From Epithemia pelagica (Eukaryota > Protista > Bacillariophyta), in NCBI GenBank assembly GCA_946965045.2, contig OX337234.1, forward strand, positions 1,550,001 to 1,614,000: a DNA stretch of 64,000 nt, read 5' to 3'. Position numbers and translations under genes: made by a program. The notes under the pieces were generated by a model that saw only the letters and a list, made by a program, of their open reading frames with translations, had not been told where the DNA came from and did not search any database. Of the stretch, positions 12,968 to 35,700 are shown piece by piece. The number at the start of each line of letters is the position of its first letter. Position 1 is the first letter of the stretch.

Positions 12968-15649
12968 TCACTTCTTGCTGGATGATGCTGCTTCCAAAGG
13001 ATGAACTTTCGGAGGACTAAGAACTTGGACAACCGATGGTTCGGTGGAGAAACCACGAGAAGATACGAGTGTACTTGGAACGTGAGCTGACAGCTGAAGC
13101 TCTTCACCGTAACGTGTACGCGGCGGTGGCAACGGCGATTGCATCTGTTTGTCAAATTCTTCCTCTTCGTATTGCCAGCTCTCACCGTGATTAGGAGGAA
13201 CCAGCAAGGATGGGGCCGCAGTCAACGGAACCGTTGTTTCCGCTCCTCCCCCCAAAGCAGAAAGGCTACTAAAACTATTTTCAAATGAGGTATCAATGCT
13301 TGCAAAGGATTCATTCAAACTTTGCTGGATTGCCAACTCCAACATCTCACGTTCCTGTTCGATTTCGGCCAAACGCGTTGCCGTTTCAGGATCCGTGTCA
13401 TGGCTGTCGTCGCGGCCAACGTAGTCTTGAAAGCTTTGACTTCGTTGGGGCAGCGAGCGAGACGAAGGATCGTAGTCGCTCGTTCTTCTCGAATCAATTT
13501 GAGGAGGCTGTGGTGATTGAAAAGATGAAGGGGATCTTGCAGCGAGAACATGTTCGTACTGGATGGGTGGTGGTGGCGGCGGTGGTGGTGGGACTTGTTC
13601 CACTGGTGCCAAGGTGCTTGATTCGGCCAAACTACGCTCCATTGCGATCTTCAGCATCTTTTCTTCCAACTGCAAGGACTCCTCTGGTGACAAGCCATCT
13701 GCTCTTGGGGTATTGGCACTCGATATACCGCCCATGTATGCCCCCGCACCATGACGCTCGATTCCACCGTACGGTGTGTGGCTCGATCGACCATCCCGGG
13801 GAGGATAATCATCCTGAGAGTCATGGTAGTGGAAGCTGGCCCCGGGACGTTGTTCTGTCATGGCGTTCGGGTACTGTGAATGGCCATTGGCTGAAAAGCC
13901 CATTTCTTCCTCTCTCTCTACTAGAGCTTGAAAGCTACGCTGCATCTGGCGAGGAGCATGACGATTGGGTGAAGCAGCTCGTGCCATACTGGAAGGACGA
14001 AACGTCTGGCGCGGAACATTGCCAAAATCAGACTCCATTTGTCTACTACGGTGAGGCAAATGAGGACTCCCATCATGGGCGTAGTTGGACGAGCGTGATC
14101 CTTGCCGGGGAGAGCTCCGGGGCGCTACGTGGTCTCGTCGAGCAACAGCTTGGTGGCGAACGTGAGTTTCATGGAACGTGACACTCGGCCGAGACTTGTT
14201 TCGGTGGGCCATCTCGTTGGTTTCTCCATAGTTGACCGGAAGAGCATTCATGTTTCTGCCATCGTACCGAGCCGGTCTTTGACTTGAACTTGAGTTTCCG
14301 ATGTATTCACCACTGTGACGAGACGAACTGGGTTTTCTTCCACGACTTGTGAAGGAGGATGAGCGATTCGGAGGCGTGAAGGAATATCCGGATGCAGGTG
14401 GAGGAGCCTGACGAAGATGGCTCTCCATTTGGTGGTGAAGATGGCCATTTGCAGACCGAGACATCTCCACTAGGTCCGCACCAATGTTGGATACATCTGT
14501 GACAACGATTGAGCGTGAAGATAGCTGTGGTGACCTCAAGCCTCCGTTTCGCGCAGACGCATCGAACCCAACTCTGCGGCGATGCGCAAGGGTGGACTGT
14601 GATGAGATCATTTCCGCCATGACATGAGAGTGCTGATGGCGAGGACTCGGCCGAACAAGATTTGGATTCGTTGAGCTGGAACCAGACGGACGAAATTTGC
14701 TCATTCTTCTTTGCCGATCTTCTGAGCTTGTTAGTCCATCTGCTTTGCTCATTGCGGAAATGTTTCGACTTTCTCTGTGTTGCGACTGTGCATGGATCGC
14801 GGGTGGAGATGCCCTGCTACTCGACATCAATCCAGAGGTAGGCTGCCCCCTCGAATCCGTCCTTGATGGAGGTGAGGGAGTGACACGACGAACTGGACTC
14901 CTTGGGGGAGATGAGTCTGAGTTCAGTTCACTGGATGGACTTCTACTATCAACAGGGTTACTCGCTGAAACATCAATTGAACTTGCGTCATCAGCAACCA
15001 GTGATTCCAATTCATCTTCGCCTGAAAGAAAGTTCTCTTGACTGCTGTAAGCAGTAGAGGAAGCCATGGTGCAAGACGTGAAGCTCTCGTAGTGTTTTGG
15101 CTCTTGTTCGAGGGTTTTCACTATATCCGATGAAATAGACTGATCTACGCGAGTGCTTTCATCATCGTCCTCGTCACATGCAAGCTGGTCGTTCTGCCTT
15201 AATGCCAGGAAACCACTACATTGACTCCGGTCATCGTCGAAGGAGTTGCATGAGCTTCTAAGTCGAGTGGAGTAGGTACCTATTGTGCGTTGTTTGCCAT
15301 CTGTGGAGAGGGAAATTGTGAATTCTGGATTCGAGCTCGAAGCGGTCATGATATCTTCCATGGTATACGGTGCGTCAAACTCTTCTGTCGCTTGATCTTC
15401 ATCGTGTCGCTGATCACGTATTTCATTTTGCTGTCCCCTGTGTGAATTGGATCGACTGCCCGTAGATGAAGCAAGTTTCTTTTGTTTGCGGAACGAGGCA
15501 TAGCTCTCATTGCATCCAGTGGAACTCGCAACCGATGAATCATCCAAGCTCATTTGCTTCACCATCGTTTTCGCCCGGGTCCTTCCCATCCACCTTCTTC
15601 CCATGAGTGCTCTCATGCGGCTACTTCGTGGTTGTTCAGGGTCTGCCAT
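12968..15649 (-). CDS. Intrinsically disordered Ser/Arg/Pro-rich protein with two UIM-like motifs
   Basis: Long open frame with first ATG at 15649 (MADPEQPRSS). UIM-like EEKMLKIAMERSL and EREMLELAIQQSL; poly-Pro tract. Confidence 0.7.
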   Translation of the reverse strand: MADPEQPRSSRMRALMGRRWMGRTRAKTMVKQMSLDDSSVASSTGCNESYASFRKQKKLASSTGSRSNSHRGQQNEIRDQRHDEDQATEEFDAPYTMEDIMTASSSNPEFTISLSTDGKQRTIGTYSTRLRSSCNSFDDDRSQCSGFLALRQNDQLACDEDDDESTRVDQSISSDIVKTLEQEPKHYESFTSCTMASSTAYSSQENFLSGEDELESLVADDASSIDVSASNPVDSRSPSSELNSDSSPPRSPVRRVTPSPPSRTDSRGQPTSGLMSSSRASPPAIHAQSQHRESRNISAMSKADGLTSSEDRQRRMSKFRPSGSSSTNPNLVRPSPRHQHSHVMAEMISSQSTLAHRRRVGFDASARNGGLRSPQLSSRSIVVTDVSNIGADLVEMSRSANGHLHHQMESHLRQAPPPASGYSFTPPNRSSSFTSRGRKPSSSRHSGEYIGNSSSSQRPARYDGRNMNALPVNYGETNEMAHRNKSRPSVTFHETHVRHQAVARRDHVAPRSSPRQGSRSSNYAHDGSPHLPHRSRQMESDFGNVPRQTFRPSSMARAASPNRHAPRQMQRSFQALVEREEEMGFSANGHSQYPNAMTEQRPGASFHYHDSQDDYPPRDGRSSHTPYGGIERHGAGAYMGGISSANTPRADGLSPEESLQLEEKMLKIAMERSLAESSTLAPVEQVPPPPPPPPPIQYEHVLAARSPSSFQSPQPPQIDSRRTSDYDPSSRSLPQRSQSFQDYVGRDDSHDTDPETATRLAEIEQEREMLELAIQQSLNESFASIDTSFENSFSSLSALGGGAETTVPLTAAPSLLVPPNHGESWQYEEEEFDKQMQSPLPPPRTRYGEELQLSAHVPSTLVSSRGFSTEPSVVQVLSPPKVHPLEAASSSKK

Positions 15650-16893
15650 TGTTCGTTTGTCACCAATGATGATGAGATGGACCGTTCTTCCTCGACTCTC
15701 CTTTTTTGCTTTGAGAACGAGACAAAGGCCAACAAAGCACAAACGGTGCGCAGAAGGGCGTAACACTTGGTGGGGCCCAACCAGAAACAATCGAATTATT
15801 AAAATAGTGTACAGATAACAAGAACTATATCACGGCATCTCGACGTTGTGGGGCCACGAGGGTCTTGCGTCTTGCTGTTCTTTCTGATTCGCCACACATT
15901 TCAAAACACAAACACAAAACATGACGGATTTTTCATTTTTCATCAGTTGTTTTTGACAAAGAGCCACACAACATTACTCGGGAATTTCATGATTCTTCCA
16001 TCAGAATTTTGAAACCCGAAAATAAGTTCGGTTTTTGTTTTTGTGCTTGATGCTATCGATGGAGATTGGTAATCGTAGTTTTCAGTCTTGTCCAGGAGCT
16101 AAAAGAAAGACAAACTTCTTCTTTCTTCTCACAAACTTTTGACACGTACAATCCACAAATAATACAACAGACAACAGAGACGAAACAGAGCACAAAAACA
16201 CTCCTCCTAACATCTCTCTCTCTCTGGAGAAGATCGAGTGCGCACATCCTTGCCACATGATCTACTGGGATTGACACTTGTTCCATATCCCAGATCTCAT
16301 CGCCACAGCGCTATCGTTTGACAGGAGAAAAAGGCGACAGTGGAACGAAATTGAAAAGGTCCGAAAGGAAAAGGTTCAATGTAGAGGACCCTACTAGCTT
16401 ACTCCAAAGCTCGTCGTTACTCTCTAGAGATGGTACTCCTCTAGAGACATAATTGCGAATGATCAACGAACACATCATAATTTCATAGGTAGACGCTGTA
16501 GCTTGCTTCAGCTAGAGATTTCGAAGAGAACATGCTGTTCCTCTCTTCTTCTCGAAAAAGCATCTGAAATCTCAATGTCAGACCTGGATGATATTACGAG
16601 CTCGAGCTTGTATTGTCAACTATCTCCCGAGGGTCGACTGTCGGTCGAGAATGGAGAATCGAGGTCGTCCGCTTTTCAATGTCCATTATTTGGTCTTGGT
16701 CGTAGCCGAATATGGATGGGCCCAACCAGAACTCTCGAAATTCGGAAGTCCGAACACGACAAACGACACACGACCCTCCCCCAAATGGTTCCGCATCTTC
16801 ACGAAAATGACGCCCCCCAAAAGAAGCCCCCAAATCATTTTTCAGTATTGGGGGTTGTCACCCTGTGATCATAAAATTGACAGCGATCGGACC

Positions 16894-19800
16894 ATGAAAC
16901 GCAATGATTCGTTGGGATTCAAGAAAGGCTTTCTTCTATCAGCAAAAGAGACAAAGAGGAAAGGGAAATTGTCTTTTGACCGCGAGAAAGAGTTGTCGCG
17001 CCAACGTGTAAAGTCTTCCGATGCGCTCCTCGGTGTAGAAAAGATAGATGGCCAAGCGGGAAAGACTGCCTTTCTACTTGACGTTCGACGTGAGAATAGC
17101 GTCAGCAATGACCAACAATCCACCACGGCGTTTGCTTTGGGCAGCCAATCTGAGAGCAGAAAGGATCACGACCAGGATCAGGAAGAAGCGGGCGACAATA
17201 ATCAGGAAGAACCTTTATTAACGCAGGTAAAGTCATCGAAACTGATAACCACGAGTGACAAGAACACAACGAATTACCCAGAGGATGAACCGAGGGTTGA
17301 AAGCCCGCGTATTGGCAGTAGCAAATCTTCTTCCTCCAACCCGATTTTGGGAGACTCATTTAGAGAGCTGCAGTTGAACAACAACTACTCAAGGTTAAAT
17401 CATATCCTTGCCGAAACATTGAGAAAACTACGATCTACCACGAAGACAAAGAGTGCCTCCATCCTACGAAAGTTTGAAGCAAACCTTCAGACTGGCAACG
17501 AAGCATTCATTTGGGGCATTCTTTTGGACTCTGTGGTCACTGAGGCACGGCACGGCTCGGTAGAGCTGCAACTTATCGTGTTTTTTGCTTTCAAACACTT
17601 TTCTTCCCTCTTGACGTTTGTGGTCAAAAGTGAATCAAGTTCGAGTCCGACCACGTCTTCTGCTTCTCCTTCCTCACGAAAGCTGTGTTTAGCGGCACTT
17701 ATGGTTCTGGATCACGTATGCTATCTTATGGATGAATGTCATCTTTTGGATCTTCTACCACAGTTGGTCGAATCTGCAATGCCAAATATTCTTCACAACG
17801 TATTGGAAAGCAATACCAAGCGAACTGTACTTTCACAGCAGGCGTCCGACACCTTTTGCAATCTCTGTCACACATTTGCTTCTTTGCTTCTGAAACATGA
17901 GTCGCAAGAGCAGTGTAACTCGATTTCCTTACAGCACAAGCTCAGACCCTTGGTGGGTGCTTTCATCAAGTGTCATGAAACGTGGCTCGCAGGCGACGCT
18001 CAGAACAACTCTTTCAATCAAGGCATCAAATTCAACCTCATCAACCCACAAGAGTATCGCACTCACTTTCGACTAGCATTGGTGTCTGACTGGAAAAATG
18101 TCTTGGAATCGCTTAATGATGAACAGACTGGTAGACATGAGGCTTCAGCCGTTGACTTTCTCAAGGTTGTTGTCGGTGATCAAAATTACCAAAAGATATC
18201 GAACAACATGGGCAGTTTGCGATCCACCTTTTTATCAAGTCACTTCAAGAAACCAGATGATGTAATCGATTGCTTGAACTCAATGGTTGATACCGAGCAT
18301 CGGCGTCAGTCTGAAGTGTGGAGTGTTAATCGAATACGCCTCCGGGAAGTAGTATCGTGGTTGGTCCAAAAGCCCGCCAAATATCCAAAGGCTCTTCAGA
18401 ACAGTTGCCAAGGAGATTTCGTGGGACTTGTTCTTCATATTTTAAAGAAAACACCGATCGAAAGTCCTACGGCATCCCTATTGTTTTGTCTTCTGTAAGT
18501 TTTCATATCTTCACCGATCTCACGATGACCCAATTTTTCTCACTTGGGAACGATTTTTTAAAATCCAGCGAGGTCAATGTATTCTGGGATGATTCCCAAG
18601 ACAGTTCATGGGCTAAAACTCGATTCATATCCATTGTTGACGTTCTACTCAGCGAAAGTTCAGCTTCGGAAAGCAAGGGCCATGGTGGCATTGAACGACG
18701 GAAAGTTTTGTGTAACCTCGCCTCTAGGTTAGCGGTAGAACAGGGACGATCACTATTGGAGCTTTTACTTCATCGAACAACACTGGATTCACCTGTAGCG
18801 GTGGATATTCTAGCATCGACTGCCTGTTGGACAAATGACTCCGACGTTGCTGATTTCGTTTGCAAACATTTCATTGAAGGCGTATCGCATCTCGGGATTA
18901 TAAGAGAACGAATGATTCAGGATGATGATTTGTTTGGCAGATGCAGTATGCAAGGTGTCGAAAGAATGGTTGACAAACTGGTGGGCCTCGGTACCAAGGA
19001 AGACACTGAAGATGCTCTGTCCTGTCTTACGACAACTTTACGAAGAGTCTTCCGCAGCTCTTCAACGTCCGGGAATGCCAAACAAATCACTCGAATCCTT
19101 TTGGATCAGATGTCAAGAGTTGAGAAACGACCTGGGATCGAGCCTATCGTGGCCAATCTTTGTCAGCGGTGGCGGCAAGACCTCCTGCACGAAGAAGGCT
19201 ACGCAGATTCACATTACGCAGATGTCGCTGTCGCTTTAATTCAAGAAATGATGAATGCGCCCTCTAAAGTCGAACCTCTAATGGCATTTGGTTGGATGGC
19301 CCAAGAGGAAAACGGCGTTGAAAGTCCCTTCTCTCCCGCTCAAGAACGGCGAATTTCAGTGTTCGTCGCAAGGGCTGCAGAGGCTTGCACAACAGACTTT
19401 GAATTACTCAAAAAGACCAAGTCGTTACAGCATCCTGATATATTTGAACGCTTATGTCCTCTTTTAATTTTGAGAAGGATACCATCACAGTACTATCAGA
19501 TTGCCCGAACGTCAAGGGTAGTCCAAGAACCATCGCAGTTGAACTTTGCGAGCATCTCTGTGTCGCTGTCGATTCATTTGGTGGATCGACTACGACCTTG
19601 TGATGACGAGATTGTACAAGTTTCTCCCGAAGAGAGAAAGCTTGCTGCTGAAGTTATTGCAAGATTGTTACCATTGGTATCAAGGGAGGGAATAGATGAC
19701 GAAGGCTCACTCTATGCCTCAATTTGCTACCCTTATCTTGTCAAACTTTCTGAACACCCTAAACAGTTGTGTGATGTCAGAAATGTACCTCTTTGGCGCT

Positions 19801-20621
19801 CGGTGAGGGTGTCATTGTTTGTTGCATGCAGCTCTATGGTTGAATCAAAAAACGTCGAAGAGACAGGTGTTGTTCTGTCGATGGTTGTGGCTTGCCTCAA
19901 GCTAATAGAGATCGATGCTGAATCGTTCAATGATGAATCGTTACTTGAGGAAGCGGAAAAGCTGCACGCTGGGTGCTGTGACTTTTTCGCAATGTGCTTC
20001 ATCAAGCTTTTCGCTGAGAAACAATTGGTGGATAGTGCTCTGGAGCAAAGCAGTCAGGGTAACTACACGAAGAAAGCTTGCTATCACCTTCTCGGTGCAC
20101 TGAGAGAAGCGACTGATCGAGGAGCAGCAATTCCACGTTGTATTTGGAACTCTATAGTTCTCGCAGCAACGAGGATCGAGGAAGGCAAAACTTTCAACCT
20201 GAGCCATTTCATCTTGCCTTGGATGTTTCGGTGGAAAACGGAAGCTTCTCAGAGCGAAAAGAGATGGCATGACTTCGACACATGGGCCTCGATGAAGCTT
20301 ATCTTCACTCTGATTACTCGACAGAAGTCGTCTGGACTCTTTCCACACACAGATCCTAAGATATCATTTGAAATCATTGTTAGTTGGACATTGGATGTCG
20401 TACGAAACCGAAAAGGGGAGGGAGCACTGGCGGTTAAGGCACGGACGGAGGCTTTCAAAGTACTTCTCGTCCTCATTGGTTTTGGACCAGAGTTGTCTTC
20501 ATCCGGAAGATGGCAGAGTTTGATGGCGGATCTTCGAGATATTCATATGTCAGAGCTTGATGCGGAATTTGTTGCCAAAATAAATTCAACAATTTCAATG
20601 GTTGAGAGAAGTCAAGCGTGA
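16894..20621 (+). CDS. Large helical (ARM/HEAT-like) protein of unknown function, ~1217 aa; join(16894..18494,18569..20621)
   Basis: Two long overlapping ORFs are joined in frame by a 74-bp phase-2 intron (ct|gtaagt...atccag|c). Leu-rich amphipathic composition. Start codon inferred. Confidence 0.7.
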
Positions 20622-21648
20622 GACCCAACTTGCGTTCCGAAACATCAACTTCGTTGTCATTTCTACCGACATATGAAGATTCGAGGAGGAGATATTGCTT
20701 CATAGAGAGATCGATGATGAGAGGGAAAGTTCGAAATACTGGCACATAAATCAGAAACCAGTCTAGCAAGGCCGATGGACTCTCGTCAATCTTCTACCGT
20801 ATGCCGATACAACCTTATTCCCAACCTCGCTTGGCAGACTCGTAAGTGCTGTGCTTGGAGACAAACACGGCTTGCTTATTATTGTTTACCTTTCAATAAT
20901 GGCCACATTAGGTAGAATCAATTCATCGGGATAGTAGGACGAGGCATCGTCATCGAGGGATAGACCTAGGTAGCCAAGTAAACACAAACGATAAGCGATC
21001 GAAGAGCGACTTACCACATATTTCTCGTAGTTGTTTAAGGTCGTGGTGGAAGGTGGGAAAATCGCAAATCCATCGAGCAGGGGGGGGGGCGGGGTACTGT
21101 AGAAAAAAGAGAGTTTGCGGGATTTGGAGCAACTACCCTTGAACTGCCGCCACATTCATTGCATGCGTAACGGTTTTTAAGAAAATAAAATTGAATTTCT
21201 CAAGCTAAAATTTTCGAAGAACAAAAGAAGGGGGGGGCCGGTCCAACCGCAACAAACTCTAGAGGAATATCGGCCAAAAACAATAGGAGCACTTGAGCAC
21301 CAATTTCGCTCACTCACACGCTCCAAAAAGACCAAAATCCCATGCAGGCGCACCTCTGCACAGGCCCGCGCACCATTTTCCTCCCTATTCCAAAAACCCT
21401 CTCACCGAAACCCAGACACACAGGACTTATTTTATTGATCAATAAATTCACAGAAATGTCACACTGTTACCACAATTCTGTTCTGGCATAGCACCATTTC
21501 TTCCAACTCGGATGCAAACGAATGATCGACTCGGAGCGTACCAACAACCAAAGCCAATGGTATAAAGCCGTCCATGGAACAACAATCCACCAACTAGAGG
21601 CACCACAAAGCTCTACATTTGAATCGCTGGGAACATCAAACATGCACC

Positions 21649-23427
21649 ATGCCGACAACCGATTCTTACCGCCCATTATATATCCCCAACATGGAGGATT
21701 CTTTTCGTCTCGATACTTTTGCTCATATTGTCTTACCGACGCAAGACAAATTTACTACTACCATCGCACGCATTGAACGGAACGACGAAGGGGCTCCATC
21801 GCTTTCTTTATTCTTTCCTCTTTTTCCGAAAAAGAAACTGGCATGTCACCCCGACATACCCGACCATGACATCACGCCGATCACCCGTGGAGCTGGGGCA
21901 AAGTGCATCGAGTTATATAAAGCTTCTGTTTCCATCCACGGAAGCCACCCCATCACCATCAAGACCGAAATTCTCTACCCAGCCTTCGTCACCAATCAAG
22001 ACGACCTGGCCGATCCTAAGAACGCATGGGCCGAAGGAATGCGAAACGTCTACGTTGTCCGTTTCCGCCAGAAAAAAATTCATGGCGTGGTTCGTCTTGT
22101 TCCCATTCGAAACGAAGAAGTGCGTTGCTTTCCAACAGATTGGATCAAGCGCGCCCCTGACGACCTGATCATTTGTCCCAGATGCTTGCACAAAAGCATT
22201 TGGACTGGCCTATTCCAACTGCGCAAGGCCATAGTCAAAATTCTCAATCGTCGAAGTGGTGCAATCGAAAATCGACAGACACAGTCGCTGTCCATAGGTA
22301 CAATTCCACTGGAGGTATTTAATTACATCCACGTGGTTGCAAACTCGACTGTGCATTCACTCACCTGTCACTCTATTCGCTCCACAGAGTCGTACCTGAC
22401 AATGGACAGCAACTTGACCCGTCACAAACTTAAGTTCAAGTTCAAAAGTGGGTTTATGCGCTTCATTTCATGCAATGACCTGAACTTACTACGTCAATTT
22501 CTTGGGATCGCTGCAGTCTATGGATCCACAGAAGCCCGACCGACTTTAACAGAGGGCGACAGTGCTCAACAGTTGAAAAGAGGACACACTCTCACCGTTG
22601 TACGAGGACAAGAAGAGTCGGAATCACCCCAAGAATTCAAGCGCCGGAGCAAACAACAGCGCATTGACTTCATTTTTTCTCCACATCAGGTGCGTGTGAC
22701 AGTTGCATTTGAGAAATATCATTATGACACACTCCGCTCTAATGGTAGTCTCAAACACGCCGCTCCAACGCCTCATCTACAGGGCATTCTTACCGGAACG
22801 GGCTACAAAGACCCGCCTGACACTGTCCTGTATGTGGATCATCAAGGACAAACTTTCGCCGAAGAAGAGGACGAAGAAAACAGCAATGATGACCTTCTGA
22901 TCACCTCCGATCTCTCCGAAGACAACAGCACCCCAGTCAAGGCGTCACCCGTACAACCAAGCCCTGTCAATCGTTCGAACAACACTCAGGACAAGAATTG
23001 GCTAGAGAAAAACACCATTCTCTAATCGAGAGAAGATCGCCTCGAGTTGATGTCAATCGACTCACGAGTCAAAGCTACAGTCAACGATCGTAGTGTTTAT
23101 GTTGGCGACCGATACATGGCAGAGGAATCAGTCGTCGAAGTTGTCTCTATCATTAGGGGATCAACATCGCCTCGCTATCTCCTCTGTCACAGGGTTTCTT
23201 GCAACCTGTTCACTACCATCTACGATCCGAAGGAGTACTTGACAGAAGAGGATGAGAAATATTACATAGACATGGAAATCTTCCTTCCTCCTTCTAAACT
23301 GCCTGCCTATGTCTGCCGCCCAGTGGCTGGACCATTGTTCAAGAAGGACCAGGACGATCTGCATCAGATCACCTTTGTCTGTCCACACTCTCAGCGAATC
23401 CTCAATGACATTGACAACTACAAGTGA
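21649..23427 (+). pseudogene. Unknown ORF (~590 codons) with one in-frame TAA at 23023-23025; probable second gene of the RAG1-like element
   Basis: ORFs 21619..23025 and 23047..23427 are in the same frame, separated by a single stop codon. Ends 49 bp from the stop of the transposase gene. Confidence 0.55.
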
Positions 23428-23476
23428 GAAGAAACCAGTAGTACCTTAATCTTATATATATAATCAACCAACACTA

Positions 23477-26400
23477 TTATGCCTCGTCCTCATCACACTC
23501 ATCTTCATCATCTTCCATCATCTGTCTTTTTCGTTCGTCGTTTAGAAGCTGATTGGCTTTGTCCGATGCTGCCGAGTATAAACCCTCCTTCCCAATTGTC
23601 CAATCAAACTTTAGCTCGACTCTCTCTTCTACTTCGTCCTCTCCACCAAGAGCAACAGTAGAAGTCTGTTCCTTAATTAGCTGCCCAAATTCTATCGTAC
23701 CCCCGAGATTACGCACCCAATTACGATTATACTCTCGTTGTTCTGGCGTTATCGTTTGGAGATACGATCTCATATGAGTCTCAGAGTATCCTGATAGAAA
23801 TAGCTGGCGTCGCTGAATCCATCGCGCCATCGGAAGAAGCCTCGTTTGCTGTCCCAATCCCTTATTAACAGCACCCCCCCGTTGTGTCCTGTTGAAATAG
23901 AAAGACTTAAACAAACTATTGAAAGCTTTTCGCATAGACATGCTTGTCAGGATCGTCATCACAGTCATTCCTGACCAATCCATTGCTTCTTACCTTCCCA
24001 CCCTTGTTGAGAGTGGATCGCCAAATTCCTCCAGTGAAAGAGGTATTCCATGATATGGCCCGATCCGAGCATGTGAGCGTAATTGGTGACGCCCTCTGCC
24101 TGGTGCAAATCAATCCATTCCTTGAGAAAAAGGTCAACTTCCTTTTGGAAGTCGAATATTTCCGCGTCTGTCATATCTTCTCTCGAGCGCAGTCTCTTCA
24201 TCGCCTCCGAGTAATGAGCTACCCCACGAGTCCATTTGTCTTTCTCTATTGGATCGGCAACAGATAGTTCGACGAGTTTTGGAAAGTGCTGCAGCATCGA
24301 CCGAACTTGCATGTTGCCCAAAACAACTTTGTCCACTTGTTTGGTCTTCCGATTCAATGGAAAATCCCACTTGGCTATGTTGCGTTCGGTTCCAAAGATT
24401 GTGGTCGAAACCAGGTCCTCGATCACATCCCGGTAAGCTTCCGCCGCTCGTTTATCCGACGTCTTGTCTTCATCCTTCTGCCAACTCAACAACCCTTGTT
24501 TGGCATTTGTGATACCTTGCTTGAAACAGAGTGTGAGAATCTTGATTCCCATACGAATTTCCATATGCAATATACATGGCACCAAGTCCATCATTAGGAC
24601 TAGGGCCGATGTTGCATTCTTGTGTCCAAATTTCTTGAGGGCCTTGAGTGAATCGTGATATACCCATTCCAAAATCATTTGTGTCTTCAATCTTTCCTGT
24701 CGTTCCTCAATAGATCCAGACAAGGACATTCCTCTCTCCTTTAGATCATTTGTCAACCGCCTTGTATATTGATTGCGAGTAGGACGATCTGCCCGACGGA
24801 CATCAAAGTGAATGCAGGTTGGATCGGTTTTTTCTGAAGGGATGGGCAGTATTCTTGGGTCTTTGCCATTTACAATCTGGCATTCATCCCAAATTGTTTC
24901 GACTTCCTTGACATTCTCTGGTAGCTGCTTCTCAAATGCATCGACTTCTCGTTGCATGGTTTGACAATGCTTCGGGGTGAACATCCTGTGGTGGCGACAA
25001 ACCCAATCAGGGTCATTCAAATGCCCCATGGTCTGGCACCAATTGCAAGTTTCTGGTTCATCTGTTGCTGCCAGATGCAGATTGTTGCTATGAATGGGAC
25101 ATTTTGTACATGGGAAGTTTGCTTTTTTGGTTGCTCCACCACAGCCGCAGAGCTTCCACTCGCAGGACATGTCACAATTTGTGACTATCCATATGGCGAG
25201 TATCCCCAATAGCATAGGCACCAATGTAGTAGCGGCTTCGGCAATCTCAGAGAACAGAACTGAGAAAATACCACGAACATTGGCCTTGGTTTCTCCACCA
25301 ATGACACATAGTAATGGGCTGACATCGTTTCGAGATGAAGTGAGGGGGTTGGACTTGTCGTTGAATTTGATACCCGCCATAGTATGATTGTCGTAGCTTG
25401 TTAGAGTGGCTCCATCTAGAGTTTGAGCCATCATCAAATTGTCTTCCTTGGCAATACCGACTGCATTACGCCCTTTCACTATCTCTCGGATCATGTCGGC
25501 CGGTCTGAATATAAAGCCTTCGGCGCCATCCTTAGTGTTTTGAATCATATGGAAAGGAATTTTCTTGTTGCCAAATTCCTCCACCATTGCCGCCACTTTC
25601 TTTAACGAACCAGCACTTGGAAGCAACGTACGCTTGTGTTTTTGTCCGCCATTTTCGCATCGTCTTAATAATTCGATCCCCTCGTAGTTCAGCACACCAC
25701 CGGCTAGGTCCATTTCTCGGAGAATCCGGAACGGTGAGTAAACATACTTCCTCATGTGGATCCGAAATGTCTCTGGCATCCTGTCACGTAGTTGCAAACC
25801 ATGGATGTCATCATACAACATCATCTCACACAGTGCCTTGAAAAAGGAATCCGAACGGTGACTATCAGTGGCATGGTTCTGTGTGCTTCGGACGATAACC
25901 ATTTTGATATGCTGCACGATGGCCTCCGTCTTCTCGTCGTCGGTGCAGGATCGCGGAACGTTGCTAAAACATTCGATTTGTTGTTGCGATTCCTCGATTT
26001 GTTTCGCCATTGTCCGGATCTTATCGGCTCTGCTTTTCAGAACCTTGGCCTGCGCCTTCTTCTCGTGTATAAGGTCGCGTCTTTGTTGCTTCAATACCTG
26101 AATTTGAGCCTGGAGTTGAGCTATTTCCTGTGATGGTGATCTAGAAGGCGACCTTGGTGGTACAGAGGATGCATTGGTTGTCACTGTCAGGTTTGATCGT
26201 AGAGAAGAGGCTTGTGATCGATGAGAAAGGCTGTTGGTTAGAGATGGTTGTTGTGACAACGACGAGATAGTAGACTGCCTTTGTGACGTTGGAGATGACA
26301 GTTCTTGTAACATGGACAGTGTGCTAGTAGCTGTTGAATGAGCAGTAACGATAGTCGCAGTTGGATTGTTGTTCCGTGACGGAGAGAGTAAGATCTGTGG

Positions 26401-27210
26401 GGAATTGTTTCGATTCCCTGCTGGTGGTGGTGAAACGGAATTGTTCGTGTCCTCATCACTTGTATCGAAGATTGTATCGTCTTTAGGATGATTCGGGGTG
26501 TTACTGGATGTGTCTCTATTGCGTGTAGGAGGTGGTGGTTCTTCAATCGGTACGCATACCATAGGACTTTCTGTAGGTGGTGGTGAAGGTTGTTGCCGAG
26601 ACGGTGGTGTGGGTGGGATCTCAGTTGGGTTGCTGTGCTTGATCCGTTGTTTCTTGCGATAGACTTTGGGGGGATCGGGTTTTCTTGTTGTTGGATACCC
26701 AGAGTTCTGATGCTTAGCACGACAAGTCCATCGGCCGTTGATGGTTTTCCGATTAAGTGGAATGCCGGGTCGATCTTTCTCTTGTTCGTCAGCGTCTTTG
26801 CAGTTGCCGCAGAACTTGAACTGGCGGAATAGCTGGTAAATATACTGACCAAATATAGAGCAGGGGTAGAAGTCATGCCCTTCGAATTCGGCTATCAGTT
26901 CCGCGATTCTCTTTCTTTCGTTGTAGTTGAATTGCAATGGTACATTCGACGCGGATTTCCTCATGGAACGAGTTTGTTTGTTGGGTGAGGGAGGTCGGGC
27001 TTCAATGGCCTTCGTTTGGGAACGAGTCAGGCCTCCGAGTATGGCAGCTGGAACTGGAGCAATGGGGACTTGAGCTTTCGTTGATGTTGATGTTTCATTG
27101 GGTTCGTTGGATTCGTTTGTTGATGGTGGGTTTGGTCCATTTGCATCTTTCTTGCGCTTGGGTGGTGGTTTCTTGCCCGGACCTTTGCGATTGCGATTGC
27201 GCTTCGGCAT
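23477..27210 (-). CDS. RAG1/Transib-like DDE transposase, 1221 aa; complement(join(23477..23925,23994..27210))
   Basis: LDG (Asp codon 25414-25416), NCDMS (25171-25173), CTKC, PCILH, TNYAHMLGSGH and SQQGWE (Glu 23995-23997). The 68-bp intron 23926-23993 continues the frame into AFNSLFKSF. Basic NLS at the N-terminus. Confidence 0.75.
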
Positions 27211-28337
27211 CACGAAAACAGTTCCGAGTTGATTTGTGAAGTACAATGAGTCGTTTACAATGGTATCATCGTAAAGGAAAGAAAGATCGAACAAATGAGG
27301 ATGGATATCGGCATTTGATGTCTCATTAAAGGCGATCAAACAACGAAAGATAGGCGACTACGGGGATATGTTAATATTAAGGACTGTATATTTTTGGTCG
27401 TCGAGTCACGAGGGTTAAATGAAATTTTGGTGGAGTCCCGATCGTTGGCATGAAATTTTGGGGGCCTAATTTCGGTCAACGATTTCGTTGCGATGCAAGT
27501 GAGGTAAGTGTTATGTTCCATTGGAATAAGAATCTATATATCTTAAAATGTCTTATTCCAACGGAATATAACAGTGACCCATGTTCGGATCTGGTTGAAA
27601 AGCTTGTCAAAGTGGCCATAGTGGATTTCGTCGAAATTTTCTTCAAGTCTCGTCTTATACTTAACTAAAAATGCTAGTACTGTGTGGCATATAGAAAAGG
27701 AGGTGGAATTCCGAGTGTGACATCGATGCGAGCAAGAGCGGTCAGACTGCTCGTCGGGCCAGTTTTGGTCTGGAAGTGCTCCTATTGAAGGATTCTTTTG
27801 CCTTTTTTTTTGTTGTATCGGTGTCAGTGGGAAAACGGGGGGTCTTCTGTACGACAGTGCTAAAAAGTGTACGTTTTTCAAAAATATTTTTAAAACGCGT
27901 CGGATTTCGCCGGGAATTCCCTGAATTTTAAAATGAGGGCTTAGCCGTATTTTGACTGTTGCCGGCGCGTTGGAGACGTTGATTCCGCGAGAATCTCATA
28001 GTTGATTGATTGTACGGGAACTAACGACCGCTGAGAAAAATGTTGGAATCAGGAAATATGGGGAAAATCAGACAAATTAATGGCAGACGACCGATATCGA
28101 AAAGTGGGCAAAAATATACCCTGGCGGTAGCCCCTGTGACATCACCTGATCGAGGTCGTAAGTCTTTGCGTTGTTTCGAGAACTAGAAATACTGGTGTAA
28201 ACTGTAATTGCCAAAAAACAAATTGCAGATGCATCCTTGATTTCCCTCACATCAGAATCATTGTAAATTGTAGAGGTAGTTAGAGGAGTACATTCCTGGT
28301 GATGTCTGCCACATCATTTCGTGGACGAGTAGGACAT

Positions 28338-28710
28338 GGATGGCCAACAGGTGGGAGTATGAAAAGGATTTCTCATCGGATCATTAGGATCAGGGTGAAA
28401 AATTCTTATTTCTTGTTCTACTGTACTGCGCTGCACCGTAGTAGATTTGTGGAGGAGTAACCCTAAATGCCGAAAAAAGGGGTAAAATTGATGGCGACTG
28501 AATTACATGGGATGATATCCGAGATTTGTACTAGTTATTAAGTAGTCCTACCTAGGAAGAATCGCCATCGACAATCGACAACAGAAAACAGATGTGAGGG
28601 ATAATACAGAATAATTTACGATAATGCTGATGTGAGTGAAAGTGAAGAATCTTCGTGAAAGAAAAGCAAGAATCTAGGATAATTCGTTCCTGACTGAACA
28701 TAGATTTTCT
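28338..28710 (+). repeat. Dispersed copy of the GTGGGAGTATG...AGGGTG / AAGCAAGAATC module
   Basis: Matches 32500-32740 (ggatggccaacaggtgggagtatgaaaagg...; aagaatctaggataa...ctgaaca). Confidence 0.75.
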
Positions 28711-29518
28711 TTATATACATAGTTTTTATTCTTGTTGGTCCACTAGTCGGTCCGTAACTTGTTCAGTTCGGAACAAATTCTCGTAGAATCTTAAATTTCC
28801 CTCACATGCAAAAATTTGGGGGTCTTGAAAAAAGTTTGGGGGCGATGGAATGATTTCGTGGTTTCCTGGAGTGGGTTCTTCACCTTCTTCCTCTGCCGGT
28901 ACAGCAGCCTCCACCTCCGACTTGCTGCAGCTGTTCTTGGTCCCACTGTTGCAAGTTCATCAATGCTTCGGCCCATTATAAACATGCAGCTGCAACGTCT
29001 TCAACAGATGACTCTCATTTATCTGATTGGTCAGAAAGTGGAAGTGTAGCGTAGTGTGTAGTGTAATAAGATCTACTGGTTGAAATCTTCATGGTGAAAA
29101 AACCATGGGACGAGTTTTTCCAGTCAAAGCCTGTGGGTGCACTACCTAGTGGGTTGACTCAATGAAATGTTGGAAGGCTGACTGGTCAGAGCCCACGTTG
29201 GCCCACCTATTGGTGCGCATGCTTGTAGGCTTTTTCCACAGCAGAGGACACCAAAGACGGTGATAGAATAACAATAGAACACATTTGACTTCTCTACCAT
29301 TTTGCGCTCTCCCGTATTTTTCCACCTTCATGAACATCCTGGTTTCCATTGCTTCATGAGAAAAAGGACGGTGAATAGAGCTGTTGTTGATTTCTGGGTA
29401 AGGAGTTTCTATTCTGACGGAAAAATAATCCCAACACCACAGTCTTCCAAGAATAACGTTAGCTACGTTACAATTCATCCGTGACGAGACATAATGGAAA
29501 GTCTCTGTCTATTTTGTT

Positions 29519-30912
29519 GTGGGAAAACAGTGGAGGAACAACGCAAAAAAATGGGAGCAGCTACATGGAGATTTAAAAGTACAAGTTAAGCAAGAGGTCA
29601 TGTTGTTTTGCAGCCGATGCCAACGTGAATGCTGCCGAAGGTGCCTTCTGAAGATAACAAAACTGATGACAGAAGAAAAATGTGAAGATGAAAAGTGGTT
29701 CCAACAGGCGGTCAAGTTTCTGTCTTCCGGCCGATCGGCACGAAATTTCATTGGTCATTGCTGTGAATATTGAGTGAATCGGAATGATTCCATCATTACA
29801 AACAATGATGTACGTCACAATCAAAGTTGCGGCGGTAGAAGTATCGATGGCTTTCTTTTTTTCCAGAGTTGGGTCTATTCATTGATTCTCCTAGCTTCAA
29901 TGAAGTGGATGTCCATTCGATTGGGGAAGTCAAAGGAGAATCACCAGGACTTTGGCATTGTGTCCCCAGTAAAGCTTGTTGTTCCCGAGCGTTGGAGAAT
30001 GAACTATTTCCAAAGAAATATGAAAATCGTACGTCTTTTGGTCTTCGATGCAACTTAGCAGGGATCAAAGGAAAGTTGATTCTTGAAGAATCTCTAGTGC
30101 AAATTGATGTTATCAAGCAAGATCGAAAAATGTTCAACAAGAAGCGGAAAGGAAGCAATGATCTATCTGATCGAGAGATATCTGATAGTGTTCTATTCAA
30201 ACCAAGCTCAACGGCAGATGTGTCAATCGTTATCTTTCATTCAGAAGAATCGAAGGCAAGTGTACTGGTGTTAATGCGAATTCACAACCGAAGTAATACA
30301 ACAAATCCCAAAATGTCGGAAATGATTCAACTTTATGACTACATAACACAGGATGGGATGTTGCGACACGGTGGTTACGACAGTGCGCGAAGTGCTGGTT
30401 CGTCAGGTCTGACAGAGCTCAACGACACCATGGCCAGGTTTTTAAATGTTCCTTCGAATTTCCCCCGAAAGGTGACAGGAGTGAAGTTGGTGAAAAAGCA
30501 GTTCTACTGGAAGGCCTTCTATATGTCGCCGTGGCAGAAGCGTGCTTGTACGATGTGATATGGACAGCCTGTAGTTGGTGGCCGAGTTAAAAACACAGAA
30601 GATGTCATGAGGAAATGCCCCATGTTACTTGAATTGTCCATGACAAAAGTTGTTGCAATAAAAATTCTTCGTATAATCAACAATGATTTTGGCGGACGAC
30701 TTTTCCCTCCCATATCAGTATCTGCAATCAAGCGCGAAGAACAGCTCATGTCTGAAGCGAAGAAATCCCAGTCGCGTACTACAACATTGAACAACTTGCT
30801 TCTGTGTTATGTGACAAGGTACCGGTACACTTTGGTACAACATGCCGTTGGTTTCCACAAGGATTTTTTTCAAGGGGTGAATCGTCTCTACTTGAAATTC
30901 GAAAAGTGTTGA
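29519..30912 (+). pseudogene. Disrupted Cys-rich ORF of unknown function, probably transposon cargo
   Basis: Consecutive ORF fragments 29519..29773, 29869..30558 and 30607..30912, broken by stops and frameshifts. CSRC/CCRRC and FIGHCCE motifs. Confidence 0.4.
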
Positions 30913-31209
30913 TGAACCCTACAAAAACCCCATCAATGGGGAGAGGTGGTGCCGGTAACATCACAAAGTTTTGTTTTGGCATTTTATGTTGGTAACGGAA
31001 CATAACTACTAGAGTTCTTTATATGGGTAACGCCTAGTCTGAATAGGGATGGGTAACTAGTACTCAAACCACACGTCTTTAAGTACTAGGTAGGAAGAAT
31101 TGCGGTTGGAAAAAAAAAGAAAACTGACGTGAGGAAAACTAAAGAATCTATGATAATTCTGCTCTGAGTGGAAATCAAGAATCTGCAATAATTCTCACTT
31201 GTTTTATGC

Positions 31210-31860
31210 AAAATGCTCACCGCGCTGCATCGTACAATAGTATCTTAATGGCCAATAGTTGGGAGTAGGAACATGATTTCTCATCGGCTCCTTAGGGTAA
31301 GGGTGCAAAAACAACATGTGAGAGAAAAGCAAGAATCTACAATAATTTACTCTCACCGCGCTGCATCGTAGTATGTTAATGGCTAACAATTGGGAGTATG
31401 CAAAGGATTTCTCATTGGATCACTAGGGTTAGGGTGCAAAAACAACATGTGAGAGAAAAGCAAGAATCTACGATAATTTACTCTCACCGCGCTGCATCGT
31501 AGTATGTTAATGGCTAACAATTGGGAGTATGTAAGGATTTCTCATCGGATCAGGGTTAGGGTGCAAAAACAACATGTGAGAGAAAAGCAAGAATCTACGA
31601 TAATTTACTCTCACCGCGCTGCATCGTAGTATGTTAATGGCTAACAATTGGGAGTATGTAAAGATTTCTCATTGGATCAGGGTTAGGGTGCAAAAACAAC
31701 ATGTGAGAGAAAAGCAAGAATCTACGATAATTTACTCTCACCGCGCTGCATCGTAGCATGTTAATGGCTAACAATTGGGAGTATGCAAAGGATTTCTCAT
31801 TGGATCATTAGGGTTAGGGTGCAAAAATAACATGTGAGAGAAAAGCAAGAATCTACGACA
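31210..31860 (+). repeat. Tandem repeat, 127-131-bp unit, ~5 copies, each with a (T)TAGGGTTAGGG-like motif
   Basis: ATGTGAGAGAAAAG recurs at 31316, 31447, 31574, 31701 and 31832. Confidence 0.9.
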
Positions 31861-31868
31861 ATTTACCC

Positions 31869-32030
31869 GGGGCTGAACATAGGATGTAAGAGAAACGCAG
31901 GAATCTGTGATAATTTGCTCGGGGCTGAACATAGAGTGTGAGAGAAAAGCAAGAATCTGTGATAATCTGCTCGGGGCTGAACATACATGTGAGAAAAAAG
32001 CAAGAATCCGCGATAATTCGCTCGAGGCTG
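31869..32030 (+). repeat. Tandem repeat, 52-bp unit, 3 copies
   Basis: GGGGCTGAACATA recurs near 31869, 31921 and 31973; it shares AAGCAAGAATC with the 130-bp unit. Confidence 0.85.
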
Positions 32031-32329
32031 AATGAGGCGGGATACTTGATCGGCCGGATCTTGTCTTCACGGTCTCAAATCCGTCATTGTTTCCCTGCCG
32101 TCGTCTTCATCATCATCGGTCACGGTTTCCGCGACTGGCTGGTCGTGCGGTTGATCTTGCGCTTGGTCTTGATCATAGTCCTGAATGGAACCCTCCATGG
32201 TTTCAGTATCCGGGACTAGTGTGTTCTCGTCAGATATCGGAATGGTCTCGGCGACCGACATGTCAGTGTCGTCGCTGTTTTGGTCATTGAAAAGGATTTC
32301 TTATCGGATATTTAGGGTCATTTCTTCTT

Positions 32330-32740
32330 TTGCTGTATAGCGCTGCATCGTAGTAGATGCGTACAGGAGTGGCAAGTAGATGGCCAGCAGGTGGGAGTAT
32401 GAAAGGGACCTCTCTTTGGATCATTAGGGTTAGGGTGCAAAATTCTGTTATTATAGCGCCGCATCGTAGTAGATCCGCAGACCGCGGAGGAAGGGGATGG
32501 CCAACAGGTGGGAGTATGAAAAGGATTTCCCATCGGATCATTAGGATTAGGGTGCAAAATTCTGATTTGTTCTTTTATTATAGCGCTGCATCGTAGTAGA
32601 TCGGTGGAGGAGTACCATATGGATGGCCAACAGGTGGGAGTATGAAAAGGATCTCTCATTTTGCACTGAACATAGGATGTGAGAGAAAAGGAAGAATCTA
32701 GGATAAACCCGTTCCGGCGACTGAACACAGACATACGTTC
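32330..32740 (+). repeat. Three further degenerate copies of the GTGGGAGTATG module
   Basis: gcgctgcatcgtagtagat...caggtgggagtatgaaa near 32340, 32460 and 32583. Confidence 0.8.
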
Positions 32741-35700
32741 ATCGTATGTCGTAGAACTACACTTGAGTGAGGTAGATTACTGTCTACCTAGATAAAACTG
32801 ATCTGATTGAAGGAAAATTGATGTCACTACTTTCTACTACTCGATGACTGTCGAACCTAGAGATCTAGGCATAACGTAGCATTTTATTGTGTCGACATGA
32901 CAAACGGGAGGTGACTGATTGTGTTAGTAGCGTTTCACGGAATCCTACCGAGGTAGGCGCTATAGGCGGGTTGTTGCGACATGGTCCATTCAAGACCAAG
33001 AACTACTCAAGTTACTCCTCTAGATATAGAGGTATCAAAGGTTGACCTAGCTTTTACTCCCGTGACGTTTCAATCATTTTTTGTTCAAAGAACGACTCCC
33101 ATTGTTGCTCGAAGTCTACGTTCCGGACCTCCCTCCCTCACAAAAAACAGATTCTCGACAACACAAATTCAACGGGTGTCGGTCACACAAGCTTTTACAC
33201 GTTGGCTGGTATAATATTTTACAAACTTTGTCACTTCCAATGGAGCTTGACGGTCACAAAGCAAAGGAAGAGGAACTCCGAGAAAAAGGAAGAGGAAAGG
33301 CGAATGACAAGAAAGAACGTTATTCCCCCCTTTCTTCTCAATCTCATAAGCCTCTGTCCCACAATGGTATGAAAAGAAACAAGGAGGAGCGTCTTGCGGA
33401 CCTTGAGAAACTGATGGCTGACTTCTCGAGTTGACTGGAACAACTATTGGATTATAACGAGAGGCTCGTTTCAGAAAACCAAACATTAGCTCGACGCATA
33501 AAGACATTGGATGACAACAACCACACTTTGGAATTGCGCGTACGCGTGTTGGAGCTATTGGCCATTGGAAAAGAAGACTAGAACCCAAGAATTTGGAAAT
33601 CTGATCTTCGTTTGATTCAGAAACCAGTCGGAACCTAATGTACTTTTCTGACGTATGTTTTAAATTACTCCAATAATAGTATTTCTGCGACCGAACAATA
33701 ATAAACCTGTGGTACTAATAGGTTACATAGTAGCTAAGTATGAGCGTCTATTCTAGATGAAATGAGGAAGCTAACCGTAGTCAGAAGTACGACAGTGATG
33801 CCACAAACCACAATAAAGATAAAACAACATCAGTCAGTAAGGAAGCACGTCAGAAAGAGATTTGAATATTATAGCCCCGGGATAAGAAAGACGATGCAGA
33901 AAGAGAAAATTTCGATAAAGAAACGGAAGGATATATTCTTACGCACGTTTTTTTCTGCCTATTGCATAGCAGAAAGTTAAAGGACAATTAGAGGTTTGCA
34001 GTCGGCATAAATTTCAGATCCTACGGATGAGAGATTTGAATCTAGTATGGGTTAAGAAAGAAACTGATCCCAACAAACTGATGCATTCTCTGACGCATGA
34101 AGTTCTAGAGGAAATCAAGAAACCCATTTGTCGTAAGAAGTACGACAGTTTGTCACCCAAAATATTAAAAAATCATCATTCAGCTAGAAACGTTAAAGTT
34201 AAGGGACAGAAACGTCATCCCATTGTATTTCTTAATATTCAGAAAACAGTTGGTTCTTTGTCATCAAAGAATGGTACGATGACACCAGGTTGTCACAATG
34301 CTTTCATGGTTCATAGAAGGATTCTTGTTCAAGACAACCCGCCCTGCAAATGATGGACTCATAATTTCGATTCACCTTGGTATGTATTCACTGCGGACCA
34401 CCTCGACTTAATGTGACAATCGATGAGCCTAACCTAACCTTTCTCCCTCATATGCTTCAATCATGTTTATGGACGTTTGAACCGGTGATTACTGGCCACT
34501 GCTGGGAACCTTCCACAACCGATCCTATCCATCCCATTCGATCAAAACAAACTAATCTTCTTATCAACCTATCCTATTCATCTTACCCGTTTCTCCCAAT
34601 CCCATTCGATCAAAACAAACTAATCTCCTCATCAACCGATCCTATTTATTGCCAATGCAAAAACTCATTCTTTCCAAAATTGATCCTATCAAAACCAAAT
34701 CTCATACAAAACTCATCATATATCCAACCCGATTCTGTATCGAAAAACACATCCTCTCCATAACTGATCCTATGCATTATTCATGCAAACCTAGTATATG
34801 CCGTATATGAATACAAACAAAGGTCATGTCACTTCCTACTGCTGAAGAAGTAAAAAAGAGCATAAATGCACGGATGAAATCTTTATATTGCTATGAGAAT
34901 GGAATAGCAAGAGCCTGGGTTTGTCTAGTATGTGATCAGTTTACTGGGGAAGATTACAAAAAAATCTATAGTAGTACATTACAGAAGAACCGGCACTACT
35001 TTGTTCCCCACAATGGGGAGGATTTATCTCCATCCCTATTGAAAGATTACGAATACTCTGGAACTGGTTGTCAAGAATGGATGAAAGGCTGTATGTTTTC
35101 CCCCCGTGGCATATATGTAAGGAATCCGACAGGTTGTTTTGTTGTTTGTAAGAAGTGTCATGGTGATTTAATGTGTCGTAGACAACCAGAAAAAGCAATC
35201 GCAAACGGGTGGTATTTTGGAACAGCTCCACAAGAAATCATGGATTTAACAGAATCAGAACTGGCACTCATAACACCTGTTAAATCGTTTGGTTATTGCT
35301 TTACATATGTTGGTGGTCGAAATCAGAAACTGAAAGGAACTTTAGGATACTACAAGGTGGCACAAGAATCAATCAGTCGCACGGTAGTAGTTGCACTGAA
35401 ACTGTCAGAAATTATTAACAGCAATATTGTGTACATTATGCCTGGAGAATTTACTGAGGAACAGGCAGAAATAGTCCGTCGGAAGCGTCAAATTAACCCT
35501 CAGAGAGTGCGTATAGCTTTGGAATGGCTCATTGCAAATAATCCTGCTTGGGGAAACATACGATTACATGATCTAAATAATCAGTTACTGCGTGCCAAAC
35601 CACATTTAGTTGATTTATCAACAACAGTTACAACAGATGCACGTACATCTATGCATTCGCAAGGAGAAGAAGCACAAATGAAAGAAGTCGAAAGAGAAGA

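Follow-up and report, generated by a model that had tools for sequence, protein, structure and literature searches.

The stretch examined here, referred to as the window, comprises 64,000 nucleotides of the diatom Epithemia pelagica (contig OX337234.1, positions 1,550,001 to 1,614,000), and the subject of this report is a 6507-bp element at window positions 21281-27787 that has the termini 5'-CAATAGGAGC..GCTCCTATTG-3' and holds two convergent genes, one for a large transposase and one for a partner protein (ORF2). In vertebrates, antibody genes are put together by DNA cutting, which RAG1 carries out; this enzyme goes back to the Transib transposons, a group known mainly from animals. The original prediction, made from the letters of the window, had singled out the transposase gene as an intact, spliced relative of RAG1 and Transib. 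The gene itself holds up, whereas the surrounding terminal inverted repeat (TIR) transposon, the second gene, and the non-Transib ends and target duplication had been missed. The transposase gene belongs to a recently mobile, polymorphic two-gene TIR transposon. The coordinates of its parts are collected in Table 1.

Ends, Target Site and Mobility of the Element

In the window, the 14-mer CAATAGGAGCACTT has just two exact occurrences, in inverted orientation (21281-21294 and 27774-27787), and it extends to arms of about 23 nt. Homology to a degenerate copy (locus L002) stops at the termini, and ends of the form CAATAG(G/C/A)AGC...CTATTG bound the unit in the window and in loci L001, L002, L004, L006/L007, L009, L010, L011 and L014, some of the transposases that share CAATAG..CTATTG ends being only about 30% identical to that of the window. 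At L005, where the convergent ORF2 is present, no matching termini were found. The window copy carries ACCAA as a second block equidistant from both ends, and such a block is seen in several copies.

The assembly of this genome (ENA ERZ21939226) contains contigs in pairs that differ by about 1%, being haplotypes or duplicates of recent origin; many host proteins are found on two contigs, and this pairing makes empty-site tests possible. For the window copy, L013 (contig ctg1248l) matches both flanks at 99% identity and runs through without the element: window 16000-21280 aligns with L013 7473-12767 and window 27788-33000 with L013 12767-17998, one base being shared. For the L011 copy, L012 (contig ctg1357l) is an exact empty site, reading ...ACATTGC/ACAG... 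against the occupied ...ACATTGC-element-CACAG.... Because these two exact empty sites share one base, they demonstrate both insertion polymorphism and a single-base target-site duplication. Nine of ten elements have an identical base (A, G, C or T) just outside both ends and nothing longer. A target duplication of 5 bp or more is ruled out by the flanks and the empty sites. It was also considered that the flanking base might be a lineage-specific terminal nucleotide of the element; this is ruled out, the sister copies L001 and L011 having A/A and G/G and the empty sites having a single base.

A sister copy, L014 on ctg1302l, is full-length at 6507 bp and differs from the window copy by 78 substitutions and no indels (98.8% identity), with unrelated flanks. 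The transposase is intact in the window copy; that of L014 has two nonsense codons, and ORF2 is intact there. In an older pair of copies, L001 and L011 (86% nucleotide identity, synonymous divergence dS about 0.5), the transposase has a ratio of nonsynonymous to synonymous divergence (dN/dS) of 0.081 and ORF2 one of 0.091, and therefore both genes are maintained by selection.

Two further observations concern other members of the family. An identical transposase protein, P0046, is found on environmental contigs from three sources (L006 372-5682, L007 6-5316, and L008) at two or more different insertion sites, with a partner gene of only 362-388 aa, which suggests recent activity in another organism too. 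On the window's own contig, about 10 kb past its right end, lies a 44%-identical family member (L009 4445-10454), which is bounded by ends of its own, CAATAGCAGCATTCTGTG, and in which the region of the partner gene is fragmented.

Structure of the Transposase Gene and Size of the Family

On the minus strand, an open reading frame (ORF) runs from an ATG at 27210 to a GAA codon at 23997-23995, after which the sequence continues as G/GTAAGAAG...GCGAAAAG/CT. Removing 68 nt (23993-23926) fuses this frame with the ORF ending at 23477 and gives a protein of 1221 aa whose only stop is the terminal one, the spliced junction reading ...HSQQGWE-A-FNSLFK.... Relatives are uninterrupted through ...HSQQGWEAFNSL... 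(homologues read across WEAFNS), and homologues are colinear with exon 2 through FNSLFK..FYFxRTxRGG. The paralogues L009 and L010 have GT..AG introns of 74 and 64 nt, different in sequence and identical in their phase-1 position, each of which restores WEAFNSLFK when removed; the paralogues L001 and L004 are intronless. Of the 72 alignment columns with at least 85% conservation, the window copy agrees with its relatives at 69, among which are all the candidate residues for catalysis and metal binding. An intact, spliced gene with a 68-bp intron one base after the Glu codon and a product of 1221 aa, as had been claimed, is confirmed at the sequence level by the splice reconstruction, the same-position introns of the paralogues and these 69 columns. 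Judged by the number of homologues, the read-through, the shared intron position and the conserved columns, the observation is likewise confirmed to lie far beyond chance. In the tree, the nine sampled copies from the window's assembly form one clade (100/100), and because the window copy groups there with two intronless copies, no fewer than two changes are required to explain where the intron is present; of these, loss of the intron seems to us likelier than its repeated gain.

The family is very large. One search returned 55 relatives and an exhaustive one 1104 cluster representatives at E ≤ 1e-3, and in public data the family spans more than 1100 sequence clusters, many environmental contigs among them. 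Dozens of diverged copies are present in the window's genome: the 30 closest relatives bear an 'ena' source tag, all eight of those looked up come from the window's assembly, and for most of the 30 the identity to the window copy is only 40-46%. A profile search of a large protein database for distant annotated relatives had only family members among the matches listed.

Fold and Conserved Residues of the Transposase

The fold was examined through a paralogue, P0001, whose contiguous core (46% identical to the window protein, which is homologous to it from about residue 471 onward) was modelled with AlphaFold from a 46-sequence alignment, with a mean predicted local distance difference test (pLDDT) score of 87.1 and a predicted template-modelling (pTM) score of 0.85. 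In a Foldseek search of the PDB with this model, ranks 1-49 were all RAG1 (mouse and zebrafish), amphioxus BbRAGL or Helicoverpa HzTransib, each with probability 1.00. The best E value was 6.6e-10, the alignments to RAG1 chains covered about 700 columns or more, gaps included, and the target-normalised template-modelling (TM) scores were 0.47-0.61 for 43 RAG1 chains and 0.40-0.61 for BbRAGL and HzTransib. The first match outside RAG1 and Transib, which could have betrayed another DDE (Asp-Asp-Glu) superfamily as the nearest structure, was the hAT transposase Hermes at E 0.011, probability 0.41 and TM 0.13-0.17. Foldseek against viral proteins gave no match below E 0.001. The three-dimensional architecture of the RAG1 core is present in the model of this paralogue.

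The motifs quoted in the original prediction (AQTLDGA, GGET, NCDMSCEWK, FPCTKC, PCILHMEI, TNYAHMLGSGH and SQQGWEAFNSLFK) are all present and colinear. Transposases with an RNase-H fold have one Asp in the first strand of the sheet, a second just past the strand that follows the first long helix, and a Glu on a helix. In the P0001 model, D139 (equivalent to D599 of the window protein) lies inside strand 132-144, D220 (D680) follows directly on strand 213-219, and the Glu equivalent to E1072 is on helix 608-624, so that D599, D680 and E1072 appear to occupy the positions required of such an enzyme. This triad is at least 90% conserved in the family alignment, invariant in sub-alignments and kept in the window copy. 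The candidate zinc ligands C701 and C704 stand 21 and 24 residues past D680, and the conserved C-x2-C and H-x5-H motifs are placed on either side of the insertion, as would be expected of a split Cys2-His2 site. The counterpart of C879-I-L-H882 comes directly after a short strand (415-417) of the model. Nearer the N-terminus, a further Cys/His cluster is probably a zinc-binding DNA-recognition module. Within the insertion domain, window 24661-24789 (residues about 808-850) encodes a conserved DLxLRxLxxxGxLxxRxxRL, a helix-loop-helix in the model, whose only full-profile match in the PDB is a weak one to the SAP domain of MKL1 (E 2.5); this SAP-like stretch may be an added DNA-binding motif.

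At the sequence level, a sub-profile of the H..H..E region (106 columns), searched against 177,635 PDB sequences, returned only three matches, all RAG1, at E 1.1-1.8. In the HMMER register, itnYiH..gsgH...GwEalnsl is aligned to zebrafish RAG1 ITNYLHKT-LAH...EGNESGNKLF; H1046 and H1052 fall on the two His of ITNYLHKT-LAH with a one-residue gap, and E1072 corresponds to the Glu of EGNESGNKLF. The register proposed earlier for these His..His..Glu motifs is thereby recovered.

The Partner Gene

A convergent second gene lies directly downstream of the transposase in every fetched locus that extends past it, L005 included, and these second genes are mutually homologous. In the window copy, ORF2 is broken by a premature TAA; in the sister L014 the codon is CAA, and ORF2 runs on without interruption for 592 aa. 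Pfam has no family for the partner gene. The intact ORF2 protein of L001 was modelled with moderate confidence (pLDDT 67.5, pTM 0.40), and all 50 Foldseek matches listed for this model contain BAH domains, among them EBS, SHL, DNMT1, Rsc2, Sir3, ORC1, BAHCC1 and PBRM1, with E values of 4.7e-4 to about 1e-2 and TM scores to isolated BAH domains of about 0.32-0.46. BAH domains are readers of nucleosomes and histone marks. On the strength of this model, ORF2 appears to encode a protein, of about 592 aa when intact, with a BAH-like domain. A RAG2-like Kelch propeller was considered and is ruled out, the model matching BAH domains only.

Relationship to RAG1, Transib and CACTA-Type Elements

We regard it as probable that window 21281-27787 is a cut-and-paste transposon with a RAG1-fold DDE transposase and a BAH-like partner, representing a separate lineage in the RAG1/Transib-CACTA ('CMCT') assemblage and not Transib proper. 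With RAG1 and Transib, the family has in common the fold of the whole core, the placement of D, D and E, a C(2)C motif soon past the second Asp, a long insertion between the second Asp and the Glu and a His pair 20 residues before the Glu; with RAG1, in addition, an alignable H..H..E block. The layout of the element is also familiar. In ProtoRAG, a RAG1-like and a RAG2-like gene stand tail to tail between inverted repeats, and here, as in ProtoRAG and the RAG locus, two convergent genes lie in one TIR element, one of them for a RAG1-fold enzyme, with a partner whose model resembles chromatin-reader domains and would be functionally comparable to the PHD finger of RAG2. Unlike RAG2, this partner is BAH-like and has no Kelch propeller, and there is no sign of common descent between the two.

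Several points weigh against this reading. The protein modelled is a 46%-identical paralogue rather than the window protein, and the placement of D, D, E and the zinc ligands is judged from sequence order and the secondary structure of the model. Searches of PDB sequences with full profiles and single sequences found no transposase, returning coiled-coil noise and the weak SAP-domain match; neither the window protein nor its exon-2 piece falls into any transposase family of Pfam, and the same holds for 31 and 46 relatives, even at E ≤ 10; the RAG1 match of the H..H..E sub-profile (E 1.1) is not significant alone, and sub-profiles of the D..D..C2, second-D/C(2)C and CxxH regions gave noise only. 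Similarity to RAG1/Transib is consequently not significant at the sequence level. The PDB has no structure of CACTA, Mirage or Chapaev, so that a fold search cannot separate a place near RAG1/Transib from one in the wider clade. The model of ORF2 is moderate (pLDDT 67.5, pTM 0.40) and its BAH matches reach only E 5e-4 to 1e-2, and both the splicing and the proposed chemistry are deduced here from sequence and models. Finally, L014 is flanked by TA/TA (7631-7632 and 14140-14141), the sole exception among the ten elements, which could reflect a flank mutation or an occasional 2-nt stagger. The earlier label 'RAG1/Transib-like' is borne out for the fold and the catalytic layout, and may mean no more than the wider clade.

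CACTA elements make more than one protein, which speaks for the alternative that survives best, an unlikely one in our judgement: that the family lies inside or beside the CACTA/Mirage/Chapaev side (or Lanisha/ESTA), RAG1 surfacing in the searches as the clade's sole solved representative. The CMCT clade, RAG1 and Transib included, is described as having in common C(2)C and H(3-4)H motifs, CA..TG termini and target duplications of 2-5 bp, and fungal ESTA elements have been linked to RAG1 by HHpred (Kojima, 2025; PMC12730594). The window family resembles this clade in its 5'-CA..TG-3' termini, its C(2)C motif and its short target duplication, which at 1 bp is nearer to the 2-bp lower limit of the clade than to the 5 bp of Transib; its His pair is present, with a spacing of 5 instead of 3-4; and the tie of ESTA to RAG1 is likewise one made by profile methods only. 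The duplication of 1 bp (2-bp TA in one copy) nevertheless falls outside the stated 2-5 bp, and the second gene is BAH-like, unlike those of the CMCT groups. Unlike CACTA/EnSpm, the family has neither CACTA termini nor a 3-bp duplication. Among 46 core sequences scanned with Pfam at a threshold as loose as E ≤ 10, none matched a family of the CACTA, hAT, MULE or P type.

We give rather less credence to the family belonging to the Transib superfamily itself, as a protist lineage directly sister to Transib and RAG1 of animals, with ends and a duplication that have drifted. It would account for the matching structures being only RAG1, RAGL and Transib before hAT at E 0.011, for RAG1 being the only PDB match of the H..H..E sub-profile, and for the similar spacings from D to C(2)C (21 here, 19 in RAG1) and from H to E (20 in both), counted in the mouse RAG1 numbering of the original prediction. 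Transib is defined by a transposase of about 700 aa, a 5-bp duplication, and CACAATG termini with a nonamer and an invariant CAC (Kapitonov and Jurka, PMC1131882). The ends of the window family depart from this and from RAG1: the duplication is 1 bp, the termini are CAATAGG and not CACAATG/CACAGTG, lacking the invariant CAC, and the ends are symmetric, without a 12/23-like spacing. In the protein, 392 aa separate the second D from E, where Transib has 206-214 and RAG1 has 253, the His pair is spaced by 5, not 3-4, the N-terminal region is different, and sequence similarity is not significant in Pfam or with full profiles against the PDB. The extra length of the transposase compared with Transib includes an additional Cys3His cluster and the SAP-like helix pair, both in the insertion and both apparently additions relative to RAG1 and Transib.

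That the gene family is a domesticated one, its RAG1-like recombinase now working for the cell and having lost its mobility, is very improbable. The strong purifying selection to which the two genes are subject, the many diverged but intact paralogues of a single genome and a spliceosomal intron would be in keeping with domestication, but each copy keeps matched inverted-repeat ends, the window and L011 copies are absent from otherwise 99%-identical homologous contigs, a copy 98.8% identical to that of the window sits at an unrelated locus, and both it and the window copy have nonsense mutations, all of which is how a transposon behaves. Least credible of all is that the likeness to RAG1 is a coincidence of motifs in a protein of another DDE superfamily (hAT, Mutator or P): an E-x-x-N after the catalytic Glu and the C/DxxH motif are found in several DDE superfamilies and there is no significant sequence link to RAG1, but the fold search, with its full-length RAG1/Transib match against E 0.011 and TM 0.13-0.17 for Hermes, and the lack of Pfam matches to hAT, MULE or P families largely refute it. 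The hAT transposases are DDE enzymes with a large insertion domain, hairpin chemistry and 8-bp duplications; Hermes resembles the present enzyme as the next-best structure, in its DDE catalysis and in its large insertion domain, and differs in that the match is very weak and the duplication 8 bp, not 1 bp.

Proposed Mechanism

For the separate lineage within the CMCT assemblage that we favour, a mechanism can be proposed on established ground, namely the gene structure, fold, conserved residues, ends, 1-bp duplication, insertion polymorphism and purifying selection on both genes. The transposase would be laid out as N-terminal helical DNA-binding modules, then an RNase-H-like domain with D599 and D680, a long, mostly helical insertion and the helix bearing E1072, with the candidate zinc ligands C701/C704 at the start of the insertion and H1046/H1052 at its end. 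Candidates for recognition of the ends are the N-terminal C-x16-C-x2-C-x25-C-x3-H cluster and the helical region before the RNase-H domain. By analogy with RAG1 and HzTransib, a dimer of the transposase would pair both element ends and nick at the CA terminus, and the freed 3'-OH would form a hairpin on the flanking DNA; then, with a 1-nt stagger, the blunt 3'-OH ends of the element would be joined to the target. The probable role of the BAH-like partner is to tether the reaction to chromatin or to license it there, in a manner analogous, not homologous, to RAG2 with its histone-reading PHD finger. Zinc binding, the hairpin chemistry and the role of the partner are what we infer from these analogies; by them the transposase would work like RAG1/Transib, yet it is not filed as Transib. 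If the partner is required, the window copy, with a nonsense codon in ORF2, would depend on other copies.

Table 1. Features of the transposon and of its transposase, in window coordinates.
Feature	Position	Strand	Remarks
Left target-site duplication copy (A)	21280	.	one empty-site base common to both flanks
TIR, partner-gene side, CAATAGGAGCACTTGAGCACCAA	21281-21303	+	copy-to-copy homology ends exactly here
ORF2 up to premature TAA (23023-23025)	21649-23025	+	48% identical to the convergent 594-aa L001 gene
ORF2 in-frame remainder, C-terminal beta-rich domain	23026-23427	+	29% identical to the L001 ORF2 C-terminus
Transposase exon 2	23477-23925	-	residues 1073-1221 + stop
Intron	23926-23993	-	68 nt, GT..AG, phase 1; G/GTAAG...AAAAG/CT
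Transposase exon 1	23994-27210	-	residues 1-1072 + first base of codon 1073
Codon E1072, catalytic Glu candidate	23995-23997	-	invariant; one base before intron
H1046-x5-H1052 (TNYAHMLGSGH), candidate His half of split zinc site	24055-24075	-	invariant
C879-I-L-H882 (PCILHMEI), C/DxxH-type motif	24565-24576	-	H invariant, C at least 90% conserved in sub-alignment
Extra cluster C722-x2-C725...C738-x-H740	24991-25047	-	at least 90% conserved
C701-x2-C704 (FPCTKC), candidate Cys half of split zinc site	25099-25110	-	at least 90% conserved; invariant in sub-alignments
Codon D680, second catalytic Asp candidate (NCDMSCEWK)	25171-25173	-	at least 90% conserved; invariant in sub-alignments
Codon D599, first catalytic Asp candidate (AQTLDGA)	25414-25416	-	at least 90% conserved; invariant in sub-alignment
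N-terminal cluster C117-x16-C134-x2-C137-x25-C163-x3-H167	26710-26862	-	conserved in full-length family alignments
TIR, transposase side, CAATAGGAGCACTTCCAGACCAA on minus strand	27765-27787	-	copy-to-copy homology ends exactly here
Right target-site duplication copy (A)	27788	.	one empty-site base common to both flanks

Genomic Surroundings

The window is rich in transposons. Just outside the left end of the element lie two large, adjacent plus-strand ORFs (16588-18498 and 18525-20621), at least 90% identical on the homologous contig, in neither of which Pfam finds a domain. To the right, a tandem array of at least five units of about 127-131 bp occupies 31163-31985, with a similar array on L013, and related single units with short inverted repeats are found 2.5 kb from it, at 28329-28702. 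Further on, an ORF with Helitron N-terminal domains (34826-37525), a Copia-type reverse transcriptase ORF (39297-43790) and a PIF1-type helicase ORF (44399-47095) follow one another, a series that could stem from a single Helitron interrupted by a Copia element. Other transposase genes near copies of the family are of the pogo-like DDE_1, Y2 and hAT types (L014 4908-6080 and 16622-17044; L009 12506-13288).

Significance

In the literature, with Repbase outside the search, we found no description of this transposon family, no Transib in stramenopiles and no DNA transposon with a 1-bp duplication. The lineage is apparently undescribed, its ends, 1-bp footprint and second gene matching no described relative. 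A more ambitious ranking is put forward tentatively, as a possibility that we would not yet favour: an undescribed RAG1-fold lineage of superfamily rank from microbial eukaryotes, with its own chromatin-reading partner, a RAG1/RAG2-like tail-to-tail layout and integration with a 1-nt stagger.

The whole RAG1-core fold is met here, as modelled, in a very large family of which standard domain searches miss all members, and the questions on which this family bears are how far the RAG1 architecture reaches across eukaryotes and where partner dependence originated. The partner gene is under equally strong selection, and its model resembles readers of histone marks, the same kind of job as that of the RAG2 PHD finger. 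The 1-bp duplication, if general, would mean a geometry of the target DNA unlike the 5-bp stagger of RAG and Transib. Transposition assays are realistic because the copies in this genome are young and polymorphic. If the family proves to be nearer to Transib and RAG1 than the CACTA-type groups are, the design of a RAG1-like enzyme with a chromatin-reader partner would either pre-date animals or have arisen twice, and the family would offer a young non-animal system in which the control of RAG-type cutting by a partner could be tested.

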